Positions 686 to 17,689 are shown, numbered from the stretch's first letter. The stretch: DNA of 64,000 bases from Octopus sinensis (GCF_006345805.1 NC_042999.1:97154001-97218000), one strand, 5' to 3'. Notes: generated from the letters alone by a model not told the origin. A program made the numbers and translations.

Positions 686-846
686 GGAGAAGTTGAGCTA
701 CACGTGTTTTTCTACGACTACCACGATATTGATAAATCAGCTCAGCTTGTTGACTGGTTCGAAACACGACTGGTCCAGAAAAAGATGCCATCACATGACA
801 ACCTTTATAAAAAGCTTCGTGGAAGAAGGAAACTGTTCAAAACGAG
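686..846 (+). CDS. Internal coding exon of an uncharacterised type I membrane mucin-like gene; peptide resembles a C2/MNNL-like (Notch-ligand N-terminal) domain end
   Basis: Acceptor gacAG at 684-685, donor GTAAGT at 847. 161 nt, open as GEVELHVFFYDYHDIDKSAQLVDWFETRLVQKKMPSHDNLYKKLRGRRKLFKT+AG. Its phase-2 end matches the phase of the acceptor at 10557. Absent from the ORF track because it has no start codon. Confidence 0.75.
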
Positions 847-1021
847 GTAAGTGACACAATGAAGAGTACAAAACTACAAGCTACATATCTCTCAAAATCT
901 ATAAATTACTTATCATAGAGCCTCTGCAGAGTCACTTTACATAATACGTATAAGCACTCAAACGTCCTTCAAATCATTGTCTACTATCTTAAAAGTGAAT
1001 GGATACATTGAATAATGTAAA

Positions 1022-2270
1022 CTAGCGGGATCCGTGAATATTTCACGAAATTAATGATAAAAATTACTGGGTTATTTCTGAAAACTGTATCCAAAAGGCA
1101 TTAAAGCGTAGCCTGTATTGAGTCTGTATCGAAAGATAGTCGCTCGTCTGCTAATCATTGAAAAGTGAAGGAAATTGGAATGCGATGATTACTTAATACA
1201 CTTTATATATACACTTTATATACTTTATACACAATTTTATAGACTTAATACACAACACTTTCCCTCATTCTCTCTCACTCAGCGCCTCACCCTCTTTTTC
1301 TCTCTCCTTCTTCCGCTCTTCGCCTTTCCCTTCAACTAATCACGTGAAAGCGTTACAGACGGGCTAAGCAACGGAGAAAAACAACTTAGTTTTTAAAAAT
1401 TACACATTTCACTCACCATCAATTCTCCCTCCCCTTCACCTCCCCGTCTCCACCCCATACCTTTCCCATCCATCCACTCCTCATCACTTCCCCATTCCCT
1501 CATATCCCCATCTCCTGATCTAAATAAAATGTCAAATATGTTGGTGCGTGACTTTTGGCCCACCTTGAATGATGATGATGATGATGGTGTGTGTGTGTGT
1601 GTGTGTGTTGTCTGTGTGTGTGTGTATATATGTATACCGTATGTTTTCGTGTAAAAGTCGAATTTTTTAGACCATTTTAAGGTCAAATTTATGGGGTGAA
1701 CTATTCCATAAATACTACTTTTGAGAGGCTGAAATTCAAACTAGAATCAGCAGCAGAAACCCAACTGATCTCTAAGTGAATAAAAACAAAAAACACAATG
1801 AATCACAGTAATATTACCAATTCTATGCATCAAAACACACGTCCTAGTAAATAACAAAACCCATAAGCAATTTTCCCCAAAAATTCCTGTCCTCGGTATC
1901 TACATAGTCCGAGGTATATTTGTAGAAAATTTCATTAAAAAATATCTATTTTCATGAAAGTTAAGACGAATTGAAGTGAACTTCGGTGAATTTTCCGAAA
2001 TTCCTCACCCCCTCCAAAAAAACTCCCCTCCAAAAAAACTCCCCTCCAAAAATACTTTCCCTCCAAAATTTTGTATATTTGGAATCTACATGATATAACA
2101 CATAATCGTATAAAATTTCATTAAAAAATATCCATTTTCTGAAAGTTATGATCTTCCAGAAATCTGTAGTTATGCCCGCTACTCATATATGAACTAAAAC
2201 TATTGCTTAGGTGCACACACAATAAAAGATAAAAGACAACATATCGATACAAAGAATTCTAATATTTATT
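1022..2270 (-). mobile_element. Possible non-autonomous Helitron-like element
   Basis: Minus strand ends CGTGAA-ATA-TTCACG hairpin, 7 nt, CTAG|T at ~1022, which is the Helitron 3'-end pattern. The 5' boundary is not clear. Contains a 16-bp tandem repeat (cccctccaaaaaaact) at ~2008-2068. Confidence 0.35.
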
Positions 2271-3013
2271 TTCATTAGCCTAAATTATTTTTTATAAAAA
2301 ATGAAATTTTTTTGCTCAATTTTTCTTAGCATGGTTTTTTAAATAAACTATTTTAATAACAAGATTATTAAATTTTTTTTTTATTTTGTCTCTATGAGCA
2401 GTACTGAATCATGTAGTAGGGCTGTTCAGAAAGGGCAAATGACAAAAATTCAAATATTTTAACAGTCAATTTTCACTTTTTAAATTTTCAAACATGGAGT
2501 TAATTATTGGCATACTAAAAGTGACTTTATTTATAATTTATTTATTAATTTTATAGTAAATAGAATATGATTATTTGTGGCTTTGTCTCTGTGAGCAGTA
2601 CTGAAGTCTGTAGTAAGGCTGTTCAGAAAAGGCAAATGCTACTTGTAATCATATTCTGTTCAATATTAATTTAATTTAATTTATTTAACATAAAGTCATT
2701 TTATTGAATTTGTATCTTCATTTTTTTTTTCTTCATTATTTTAAAAATTCTTTAAATATATTCATTTGTAACTTTGTCCCTGTACAGTACCGAAATTACA
2801 GTACGTACATTATGTCCAGAAAAGCCAGAGTTGCAATGATTATCATGCATTTTTAATTTAATTTCTGAATGAGAATAAGTCAAATGAAAAAAATCAAAAT
2901 TTTGTTTGAGTTTTCTTGGAAATTTTTGAATTCAAAATGACTGCAAATAATGGCAATTTTATATATTTTTAATTAAAATTTTACTATTACTGCAATGCCT
3001 GTAAAAACACAGG

Positions 3014-3374
3014 ACTAGCCAATGAAAAATGCAGACGCATACTAACAATATTCTTAACAATTAAACCTGGAAAAGTAGAGGACAAAAAAACTCATTAAAA
3101 TTAAAGCTTAAAATATTACTGCTAAAATCAAAATTTCAAAATTTATTATTAATTCATTTAGTACAAAAATTAAAATTAAAATAAAAAAAAAAAGTGAAAT
3201 TAATTGAGTTAATTAAAAAATATGAAAAAGTACCTAAGAGGTACTTTTTAATTTTAAATTTAGCAGCAATATTTTGAGCTCTAGTTTCAATGAATTTTTT
3301 TCTTGTCCTCTACTTTTCCAGGTTTAATTTTTAAGAATATTGTTAGTATGCGTCCGCATTTTTCATTGGCTAGT
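3014..3374. mobile_element. Foldback/MITE-like inverted repeat
   Basis: 3014-3085 is the reverse complement of 3303-3374 with 2 mismatches; weaker pairing continues inward; AT-rich centre. Confidence 0.7.
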
Positions 3375-3375
3375 A

Positions 3376-15049: not shown

Positions 15050-15392
15050 GTAATTGTTAATTGTTCGTTCTCTTCTTTAATTTTGATATTTTAAATGACT
15101 AACATTTGTGGGTATCATGTTGATGATGCATGAATTTTATTATTTCATCAAACAACTTCATCACTAAAAGATTACATTGTGAATACCAGCAAAACAATGA
15201 TTTTATTAGTCGAGACTGTTTCAGTAGTTGTTTTTGCTATTTATTCCGTGACACCTTTTTCTTTTTTCGGGAATAGTATACTTCCGACTACATTATCCAA
15301 TATGCCCTTTTTAAATTTGTTAGCGTACAATTTCGAGAGCGATGCCGCTTTATTTCTGGTATATTGTCCTAGTATATTGGGCAAGTTGCTGG

Positions 15393-15890
15393 TGTATATA
15401 TATATATATATATATATATATATATATATATATACATATATACACATATGTATAAATATATATATATATAGAGAGAGAGAGAGAGAGAGAGAAAGCGAGA
15501 GAAAGAGGGGGAGAGGGGGAGAGGGGGAGATAGTGAGGGAGCGATGTATATATATATATATATATATATACATGCATGTATATATATATATATCTTTATA
15601 TATATATGCATATGTATATATATATATATGTGTGTGTGTGTGTGTGTATGTATATATATATATACATATATATATACATGTATATATATACATGTATGTA
15701 TGTATATATGTATATCTATATATATATATTGTGTGTGTGTGTGTGTGTTGTGTGTGTGTGGATGTATGTATGTACGTATATATATATATATATATATAAT
15801 ATATATATATATATATATATATATATATATATATATATATATATATATATATATATATATATAATATATATACATACACCACACACACAA
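15393..15890. repeat. Compound (TA)n/(GA)n/(TG)n microsatellite block
   Basis: Direct reading. Confidence 0.9.
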
Positions 15891-17230
15891 GCTTTTAATG
15901 ACCATCGTGAGCTGCATAGCGTTGAAAATCCCTGTCTGTTAGCTCTTTGTTGAACGGAAGTCAGCATCGTAGTAAATCTTTGTTGTAAGGTGTGGGAAGC
16001 TCGTGTAGCAGCCATGTTGGCAGCATTCCTGACCAGGTGTGTAGTGCGTTGGTCTTTGTTCTTTGCAGCTCGTGCAGCAGCAGCAGTTCGTCGAACTTTA
16101 CGTTGGACATCTGTTTGGAGTGCTCTTGTAGTGGCTGTACGTTCTGCATTTTGTAATCGTCTAACAGAAGTTTCCAATGACGATTCATTTGCCCTCCTTG
16201 CTGATGTTCTTACCGCTTTCGCAGTTTTACGGTCTATTGAATCTCTTCCTTCGGCGCATGACCTAAAATAAGCTGGAGGAAATACACTCATATACACTGT
16301 TAAGTATTAAACATTAATTGAAGGGTTACTATGTAACTGTAAATAACTTGCAAGCTCGCAACTTCTGCGATAATAATTAACTGGTAGTTGAACGGTAAAT
16401 GTGTAAAATAAGATGATGCTAGTGTTATGACATTAGAATGAAAATGGAAACAATAAAAGTGAAATAATATTATAGTCCTATCACAATATAATATGCATAA
16501 TAGTGAACCAGTGTAAAAGATTGTCCGTGTCCGCGTTAGGCAAGAAGTTAGAAATTGTTTTGGTCCATGACACTCCATGGATCGTAAGTAAGGCATGTGT
16601 AAAATTTTAAAAAATTAATAAGAACTCATTAGTAAATTAAATTCTGGACGCTTGTGATTTACATTAGCCATGAGCACCATGGTATTTCTAACACGTCATG
16701 CTACCACTGAACAGGTATTTGCGAAGTTATCTCGTGAAAGAGTAAGTAAATGTGTGTAAAGCGGACCATGAGTGCAGTTAGATTCTGCCCAGTTGGACAG
16801 AAGTTGTTGAATGGGAAACAACTGTACACCATACAGGGTTAATGTAACGAAGTGTGAAGTTGCATTGTTCAATGATAGAACGATGAAGTTATTTACTTGG
16901 AGGAAAACTTGTGAATCTGTTTCGAATCACAAACAAAATGAATGTTACTGTAAATGTGCAATGAAAGTGAAACATTGTTATAAACCGGAAGAACAAAATT
17001 GAAACATAGATGTCATTCTTTCACTTTTGACATGTAATAGCGAACCAGTGTAAAAAAAAATTGTTCCGGGCCGAACTAGGCAAGAAGATGAAAACCTTTT
17101 TTTTTTTGGCCTATGACACTCCATGGACCGTATGTAATGTATGTGTTAGATTTGAATGAAATCGGTTGTGTAGTTCTCGAGTTTTGGGTATTCACACAGA
17201 CACACACACATTCTCATCTTTATATATATA
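15890..17230 (-). mobile_element. Helitron 5' fragment with the start of an STPR-like repeat ORF, in an intron of the mucin-like gene
   Basis: Minus 5' end TATATAAAGATGAGAATGTGTGTGTGTCTGTGTG...AACCGATTTCATTCAAA resembles Helitron 5' termini. ORF 16297->~15900 has ~23-aa R/A/T-rich repeats. Internal ~90-bp duplication (16500-16590 vs 17036-17140). Confidence 0.55.
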
Positions 17231-17442
17231 TTTATATATATATATATATATGTAAATTCCTCTATTTACATAATATCGAGGTCTCTTTCTTTTGTTATCT
17301 TACCGTTTTTATCAATATATATATATATATATATATATATATATATATATATATATATATATAGTTGATTGGCATAATAAACTGATCATATTTTGTTTTC
17401 TCTTCGCAATACATTGACTTGTTTCTCTTACTTTTCATACAG

Positions 17443-17689
17443 GACTTACATACGATCACGACGCACAACTAGGCCGTCGCATCCTCCTCACAACCAGAAC
17501 CAAAACCACATCACCACACATTCAGTACCGCAGTCATCATCGCCACTACCACCACCGCCGCCGCCGCTGCCACCACCGCCACCTCCACCACCACCACCAG
17601 CAATGCAAGAAGCCGTTGAATTTCTTCGGAGTCTTCTCTCTGTGGGGACACTGCTCCCACAGATCATCACGTGCCGACCACAATTGTAG
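17443..17689 (+). CDS. Terminal exon: cytoplasmic tail with polyproline tract
   Basis: Acceptor cttttcatacAG at 17441-17442, phase 2, matching the donor at 15050. Encodes (R)TYIRSRRTTRPSHPP...LPPPPPPLPPPPPPPPPPAMQEAVEFLRSLL...CRPQL*. Confidence 0.8.

Follow-up and report, generated by a model that had tools for sequence, protein, structure and literature searches.

A giant-stalked membrane protein gene, annotated in fragments in Octopus sinensis, probably belongs to an undescribed mollusc family with a Notch-ligand-type C2 head

A stretch of 64,000 nucleotides (nt) of Octopus sinensis chromosome CM016861.1, at ~97.15 Mb (assembly GCA_006345805.1, identified in PMC10700109) and called here, at its full length, the window, contains an open frame of unusual size, and the question it raises is to which gene this frame belongs and what kind of protein the gene encodes. 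A first-pass annotation, made from the sequence alone, had drawn it as an unrecognised giant type I membrane mucin-like protein, reconstructed across four exons and unassignable to a known family. The best explanation, which as a whole we consider likely, is that the window contains the last three coding exons of one gene (686-846, 10557-15049 and 17443-17689), that the encoded product has ~1630 amino acids (aa) or more and crosses the membrane once, that exon 686-846 matches, by sequence comparison, the final third of a C2 (MNNL) domain of the Notch-ligand type, and that the gene is a member of a family so far undescribed and seen here in both gastropods and cephalopods. The locus is read as one real gene whose architecture is largely the one first drawn: an N-terminal piece, a stalk, a helix and a short tail.

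The frame 10540-14730 is open for 1396 codons and is the longest of the window, the runner-up having 286 codons; given the stop-codon frequency of the window, a frame of 1396 codons has a P of ~1e-36. The window is AT-rich and microsatellite-rich and shows 344 open frames of at least 55 codons. Frames the size of a small exon are common among them, so the small exons need independent support. The four segments first proposed (686-846, 10557-14391, 14661-15049 and 17443-17689) do show AG...GT boundaries and give 4632 nt, 1543 aa and a single terminal stop, as claimed; there are three exons instead of four, however, since the second of the proposed introns is false. NCBI and UniRef hold a single-exon model of 777 aa (P0001) at window positions 12397-14730, which is the sole O. 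sinensis model and reads through 14392-14660 up to a stop at 14730. Exon 686-846 is in no O. sinensis protein found by exhaustive HMMER search, and exact-product look-ups of the window open reading frames (ORFs) 10696-14730 and 14703-15053, and of P0002, P0005 and P0007, found none of them on record. The gene is badly annotated apart from this C-terminal model, and the word unrecognised holds to that extent, but not for the part that the 777-aa model covers.

Three word-index protein searches (whole protein, masked protein and junction chimera) were empty; they are false negatives, since the collection holds the identical P0001, and word-index negatives on low-complexity queries are untrustworthy. 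The relatives came from exhaustive HMMER search, by which the comparison with molluscs that the first-pass annotation had proposed for the N-terminal and helix-tail peptides was successful. The family members are KAL8616633.1 of Nucella lapillus, XP_025077751.1, XP_025078056.1 and PVD19951.1 of Pomacea canaliculata, XP_059143730.1 of Physella acuta and KAG5693130.1 of Batillaria attramentaria, all of them fragmentary or split models; in the three NCBI-annotated genomes examined, those of O. sinensis, Physella and Pomacea, the gene is annotated in fragments only. A further relative is a 563-aa ORF (P0003, E 9e-12) of the ENA contig ERZ21867824:ctg121373l (L001), whose DNA barely aligns with the window. 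L001 is taken to be from a distant cephalopod, because its protein groups with that of the octopus (KYWPA...CKRR) versus those of the snails (RYWPA...CRQQR). Its giant exon, 6495-11692, consists of four overlapping open frames with three frame shifts, which suggest a noisy long-read assembly. The protein is therefore no longer without an assignment: it has relatives in Nucella, Pomacea, Physella and Batillaria, and its N-terminal piece in the window is the probable end of a C2 (MNNL) domain. Metagenome pattern scans found no match to the stalk motif and one chance match in a bacterial GspF/PilC-like gene of 63% GC.

The features of the corrected model, with codon scores from a table trained on the second exon of the first-pass annotation, are as follows.

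686-846, plus strand: exon of 161 nt, in phase 0 at its start and with 2 nt of a split codon at its end; from ag|GGA to GAG|gtaagt it fills its open frame exactly, and codon usage gives it no support of its own (p ~0.2). Its product, GEVELHVFFYDYHDIDKSAQLVDWFETRLVQ...RRKLFKT, is the putative last third of a C2 (MNNL-like) head.
707-772, plus strand: C2-end motif FFYDY..D....LVDWF.T.L, invariant in the family.
847-10556, plus strand: intron 1, of 9.7 kb, with many microsatellites and retroelement remnants.
10557-15049, plus strand: giant exon of 4493 nt, with the last C2 strand, the stalk, the membrane-proximal motifs, the helix and the KRR stop-transfer residues; acceptor tttttctttcag|C, donor AAG|gtaatt, codon score 0.23-0.39 bits/codon.
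10558-10584, plus strand: last C2 strand, LEFNWSITC, inside the giant exon.
12292-12378, plus strand: (AGT)29 coding microsatellite, translated as 29 consecutive Ser; the first position of the NCBI 777-aa model, 12397, is just beyond it.
14599-14649, plus strand: membrane-proximal motif TLPKWIIISRNFEDFLR, inside the interval 14392-14660; L001 has TLPRWIIFPQNFEDFLR.
~14683-14730, plus strand: zone of a ±1 frame break, with A-runs; the stalk-frame stop is at 14728-14730 and the helix frame is open from 14661.
14754-14804, plus strand: membrane-proximal motif 2, PRWSTVFLKEQKLYEPT; L001 has PHWSTVYLKEKKLYQPT and the snails GPKV[IV]VP..GL[FY].P.
14967-15041, plus strand: membrane helix YWPAITGSTFGALFLLAAILTSVVC (aa 1437-1460 of the 1543-aa protein), with a Kyte-Doolittle peak of 1.99.
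15050-17442, plus strand: intron 2 of the corrected model, of 2.4 kb, with dense TA and AG microsatellites.
17443-17689, plus strand: last coding exon, encoding the cytoplasmic tail, which starts (R)TYIRSRRTTRPSH...; acceptor cttttcatacag|G, codon score 0.261 (p ~0.011), stop at 17687-17689.

Junctions 846/10557 and 15049/17443, both proposed in the first-pass annotation, are confirmed as real by comparison of sequences: each shows the same exon boundary and codon phase in L001 and Physella, and snail proteins align across each. Nucella KAL8616633.1 (E 4e-13) and Pomacea XP_025077751.1 (E 4e-5) span the first junction in the exhaustive HMMER search, and the snail proteins run over it unbroken as ...KT|[RS]L.F.W.... 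The L001 homologue of exon 686-846 also has 161 nt, identical phases and ag|GG...AAG|gt ends, with 58% protein identity (E 3e-10). The L001 giant exon follows ~5.9 kb downstream of it; its acceptor completes the split codon in the same way, and the frame goes on with RLQFDWSV where the octopus has SLEFNWSI. Exon 686-846 aligns with Nucella aa 98-157 (E 2.7e-7), with Physella exon 3156-3337 and with Pomacea exon 2523-2684; the boundary match was checked in Physella, where the exon, in phase 0, has a G right after WPKD| and closes with ...DKT and 2 nt before gtaagt, and the exon after the C2 end starts LTFEW. The phase-2 intron after KT is at the same position and phase in the window, L001 and Physella, and the columns FFYDY..D....LVDWF.T.L ... 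G.R...KT|.L.F.W are invariant in the family alignments. At the second junction, Batillaria KAG5693130.1, Pomacea XP_025078056.1 and Physella XP_059143730.1 align over the helix and the junction; codon AG|G is split straight after C[KR].R in the window, L001 and Physella alike, and the tail exon starts T[YH][IV]R.RR in the two cephalopod sequences versus L[FL][IV]QR in the snails. The family members show [VI]F.[KR]YWPA..G.T.G..FL..A..TS..C[KR], then an intron that splits the codon AG|G, and a tail that is basic at its start.

Junction 14391/14661, the remaining one of the first-pass model, is refuted on the same kind of evidence, and the interval 14392-14660 reads as coding sequence of the giant exon. 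This interval is open in the frame of the stalk, codon-biased, and contains a motif kept in L001. It scores 0.303 bits/codon, as high as the exon around it, and none of 494 stop-free null segments (0/494) reaches this score. The motif TLPKWIIISRNFEDFLR is the sole alignable island to L001 in the C-terminal half of the stalk; the interval matches L001 in tblastn (E 5e-7), and there the motif and the helix region share a frame. In Physella the stalk and the helix are in one open frame of 2172 codons, and in Pomacea they form one colinear block with frame breaks. The three exons add to 161+4493+247 = 4901 nt, 2 more than a multiple of 3, and a ±1 frame break must therefore lie where the stalk and helix frames overlap. 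The break zone is 44 nt in the window versus 96 nt in L001, and alignment scores for the shift position are flat (97-103), so that no exact break position is preferred. The break is most probably an assembly indel, because both flanks are conserved and codon-biased and the stretch is rich in A-runs; the 269-nt intron is needed only because the assembly has the break at ~14683-14730.

Three other readings of this region have to be weighed. The four-exon model, with a genuine constitutive 269-nt intron 14392-14660 joining the stalk to the helix exon, has a consensus donor, AGA|gtaagt, and an acceptor, ctttcaaatag|A, with a T-rich tract, and splicing of the interval restores the frame exactly. 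Nevertheless, GTAAGT occurs by chance about once per 4 kb, Physella has no intron at that place, and splicing would remove 90 residues apparently under selection, with an exon-like codon bias and the sole stalk motif in common with L001; this model is very unlikely. A frame break that is real in O. sinensis, with a main product that stops at 14730 without the helix and would be a secreted or soluble stalk, agrees with the deposited assembly, which reads so, and with the NCBI placement of the stop. In an optional variant of it the 269-nt interval would be an exitron-type intron switching between helix-less and membrane-anchored forms, and the good cryptic splice sites and a length that is not a multiple of 3, so that splicing alters the C-terminus, fit with this. 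The helix region, however, is open and has both a codon bias (p 0.005) and the signature invariant in the family, a conservation unexpected in an untranslated region unless the change is very recent, and it shares one frame with the motif in L001 and with the entire stalk in Physella; the real break, with or without the exitron, is unlikely. A decaying pseudogene in O. sinensis could account for the single frame break and for a tail that has diverged from the PPxSEYSS motif retained in L001 and the snails, but ~1630 codons with one disruption and no stop, intact splice sites and conserved motifs leave it highly improbable. The three-exon gene with an assembly indel is the reading followed below.

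The small folded-looking N-terminal domain of the first-pass annotation is identified as the probable last third of the C2 head, formed by exon 686-846 and LEFNWSITC. The name of the head comes from the relatives: Nucella scores 28.8 and 30.7 bits on Pfam MNNL, the reconstructed Physella head 32.1 bits, with a curated cut-off of 22.5 bits, and the 181-aa model of Pomacea has a precomputed MNNL match. The Nucella head is not a model chimera, because unannotated exons of Physella and colinear models of Pomacea encode the same head. In hhalign the family profile matches the Delta/Jagged C2 with a probability of 75% and E 2.5e-5 over the first 43-45 columns only; the target was an alignment of the C2 domains of DLL1, DLL4, Delta, JAG1, JAG2 and Serrate, with sequences verified against PDB entries. 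By itself, the C-terminal two thirds of the head has no MNNL match in Pfam. A global alignment pairs WP, FFYDY with LIIEAWH, and T.L.F.W...C with T.L.YSYR..C, which is suggestive, not statistical. The AlphaFold2 model of the head, from a 3-row alignment, is all-beta, and the Foldseek matches of this low-confidence model are all C2 domains, Jagged2 and DLL1 among them, a hint of fold class only. Neither the Nucella head nor the family profile found more than chance matches in sequence searches of the PDB.

The loci of the snails show the complete layout. Physella (L004, 1415-11367) contains three unannotated C2 exons, which match Nucella with E 4e-18, 6e-13 and 8e-11, then a 2172-codon exon encoding the stalk and the helix, and then a tail exon; its annotation, XP_059143730.1, is the last 356 aa of a product of ~2400 aa. 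Pomacea (L005, 1-10954) contains four adjacent models on the same strand, of 181 aa (with MNNL), 764 aa, 1313 aa and 249 aa (with the helix), colinear with the family layout, and its stalk has three frame breaks. The giant stalk shares an exon with the helix in all four loci: window 10557-15049, L001 6495-11692, Physella 4409-10927 and Pomacea ~3306-10621. The stalk has ~1360-1400 aa in O. sinensis, 1700 in L001, ~2170-2200 in Physella and ~2400 in Pomacea; the Nucella model has only ~190 aa of stalk, perhaps through an error of modelling. A giant stalk in Physella and Pomacea means that it is not octopus-specific, contrary to the lineage-specific protein that had been supposed.

The stalk sequence is unalignable across three lineages and its composition is kept, S/T/K/N-rich and nearly Cys-free. 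The description of the octopus stalk as ~1400 aa, S/T/N-rich and with almost no Cys is accurate: the 1543-aa protein has S 14.3%, T 11.0%, K 8.1%, N 6.8% and P 6.5%, with 4 Cys. The many N-glycosylation sequons once noted are at chance level (29 seen, 24.7 ± 4.2 in shuffles). Mucin-like is apt for a long S/T-rich Cys-poor stalk, but serine, threonine and proline (S+T+P) make up just 32% overall and at most 52 per 100 aa (78 per 100 aa in Physella), and the only tandem repeats that Tandem Repeats Finder reports in the giant exon are (AGT)29 and a 21-nt repeat present 2.4 times. Physella, with 1 Cys in 2172 aa, has true tandem repeats of the proline/threonine/serine (PTS) type. The start of P0001 directly after the poly-Ser run looks as if repeat masking had caused it. 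Both (AGT)29 and the (CCA)19 of the tail are perfect or near-perfect coding microsatellites, the length of which likely varies between individuals. A stalk segment at ~12871-13134 (aa 826-913) matches the highly repetitive 3048-aa protein P0004 in 8 stretches (E 5e-7, 33% identity), pairing ...VKVKGSKNQIASKTKLQTNNRTNQF... with ...IEVKGSSELISSKINLQMINRAQF...; this is probably a chance similarity multiplied by the repeats of P0004.

The single transmembrane helix, correctly placed in the first-pass annotation, is strongly hydrophobic and is followed directly by KRRTYIRSRR, with basic residues in six of the ten positions after it versus two before it. Its pattern, F..YWPA..G.T.G..FL..A..TS..C with a GxxxG, is near-invariant in the octopus, L001, Nucella, Batillaria, Pomacea and Physella, and the helix is far more conserved than that of the DSL ligands. 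Pfam finds nothing in the window protein except a sub-threshold TM_ErbB1 match at the helix. The start of the octopus tail has homologues in L001, where the tail exon reads (R)THVRRRRVKR..., and in the snails, which have LF[IV]QRR.W. Beyond ~35 aa the O. sinensis tail has no homology, and where L001 and the snails have PPxSEYSSxS the octopus has a poly-Pro/Leu run of 19 residues (17543-17599), from (CCA)19. A Pro-rich tail is therefore present as described, but as a peculiarity of O. sinensis and not as a feature of the family.

Two known systems resemble this family. Like the DSL Notch ligands (Delta/DLL1, DLL4 and Jagged/Serrate), it has a single membrane pass and a short tail, and its relatives have the N-terminal motif G.[FL].[LI].L..F.N..G....G.CC...C..C over the Pfam cut-off. 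Unlike them, it has no DSL domain and no EGF repeats, with a disordered stalk of 1400-2400 aa instead, and the C-terminal two thirds of its C2 is too divergent for Pfam and hhalign. Pfam finds no DSL domain after the C2 in the window protein, Nucella or Physella, the sequence after ...LEFNWSITCSDCS is Cys-free and disordered, and the merged alignment stops at the first DSL cysteine; nor does Pfam find EGF repeats in the window protein, with its 4 Cys in 1543 aa. Without these modules, the protein is not a canonical Notch ligand. With the membrane-tethered mucins (MUC1/MUC4/MUC16 type and insect mucin-like surface proteins) it shares a long S/T-rich Cys-poor ectodomain in a giant exon, a single helix with a short tail, fast sequence change with conserved composition and, in Physella, the PTS repeats. 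It differs from them in the octopus stalk, with no PTS tandem repeats, S+T+P of 32% and a net basic charge, and in the C2 head, and Pfam finds no SEA, vWD, NIDO or AMOP modules in the window protein. The family fails the definitions of both the DSL ligands and the classical membrane mucins, partly resembles both, and is a new domain architecture. In the literature no description was found of an MNNL protein of such architecture, and we know of no MNNL domain outside the canonical DSL ligands. A KIAA1549-type protein, a SEA-mucin and an ORF derived from a transposable element were also considered as candidates and were dropped for want of Pfam support.

A type I surface stalk protein, as first proposed, remains the best reading of the topology, as we infer it. 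The N-terminus would be outside and the C-terminus inside, because MNNL domains are extracellular and because of the Cys pattern and the positive-inside rule, the basic cluster being after the helix. The stalk would be glycosylated and may serve as a long spacer or glycocalyx element, the conserved GxxxG helix may mediate dimerisation or pairing with a membrane partner, and, lacking a DSL domain, the protein would not be expected to activate Notch canonically. By analogy with the C2 of Delta and Jagged, the distal head might attach to membranes or to a partner molecule on a surface facing it; PMC3888931, PMC5538765 and PMC8490980 describe the Delta/Jagged C2 domains as binding phospholipid and contacting Notch.

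Several points weigh against the explanation as a whole. Support for the junctions is wholly at the level of genome and protein sequence. The earlier part of the C2 is not in the window, and the MNNL portion of the octopus would sit upstream, unseen here; the MNNL similarity of the family ends at the first ~45 columns, the part homologous to the window exon being unmatched by Pfam and hhalign, and the AlphaFold2 head model has a confidence score (pLDDT, predicted local distance difference test) of 44.7, which is low. The stalk exons of L001 and Pomacea are broken in frame as well, by error or in reality. The octopus stalk is net basic (K+R 187 versus D+E 130) and lacks PTS tandem repeats, unlike classical mucins. 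More 5' exons before the window are supported, as the first-pass annotation had it, but the signal peptide it placed there is seen in no family member, neither in the Nucella model nor within 1.4 kb upstream of the first Physella C2 exon. The missing signal peptide, together with the fact that most C2 proteins are cytoplasmic and that the octopus stalk is K/R-rich and not repeat-mucin-like, would fit a reversed topology, in which the C2 head and a basic disordered region of 1400 aa are cytoplasmic and the C-terminus is a membrane anchor. Against it are a head of the extracellular MNNL type with a CC...C...C pattern, the basic residues concentrated after the helix, the Physella PTS tandem repeats, which are typical of O-glycosylated ectodomains, and ~80 residues past the helix, hence no tail anchor; we give the reversed topology very little probability and retain the N-terminus-out arrangement.

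The rest of the window shows features that do not belong to this gene. Intron 1 contains a degenerate remnant of the long interspersed nuclear element (LINE) type, zf-RVT at 4015-4812 on the minus strand, and LINE-type remnants with RVT_1 and Exo_endo_phos_2, also degenerate, are at 30978-31838 and 32257-33042, both on the minus strand and ~13-15 kb downstream of the gene. Just upstream of the giant-exon acceptor there is an 85-aa ORF on the minus strand, 10173-10430 (…KANRPDIVVRDHEEKKCFLIDVSIPADDNV…IVGALG…), with no Pfam match, which resembles pieces of retroelements common in invertebrates; a similar-looking …VIGALSTVTKGL… is present in L001 at 18352-18627. The intron 15050-17442 contains dinucleotide arrays (TA and AG) of ~500 bp within 15134-16306, and an Arg/Ala/Thr-rich open frame of 196 codons on the minus strand, 15716-16306, has no Pfam match.

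One practical result is a corrected model of a large gene that the annotations of O. sinensis, Physella and Pomacea, and probably that of Nucella, break up or truncate; the giant low-complexity exon defeats annotation pipelines, and the family was missed as a result. The near-invariant helix beside a stalk without remaining similarity is a pointer to the site of function. A further-reaching reading, to which we give slightly less than an even chance, is that gastropods and cephalopods carry an undescribed descendant of a Notch ligand, in which the C2 head was kept, the DSL and EGF modules were replaced by a mucin-like stalk of 1500-2400 aa, and the GxxxG helix was conserved. If so, no MNNL domain outside the canonical DSL ligands would have been known before this one, the MNNL/C2 module would not be confined to them, and the family would offer a natural 'C2-only' protein for studying that domain alone; in these molluscs the protein may serve adhesion and sense lipids, or it may modulate Notch signalling in a non-canonical way.

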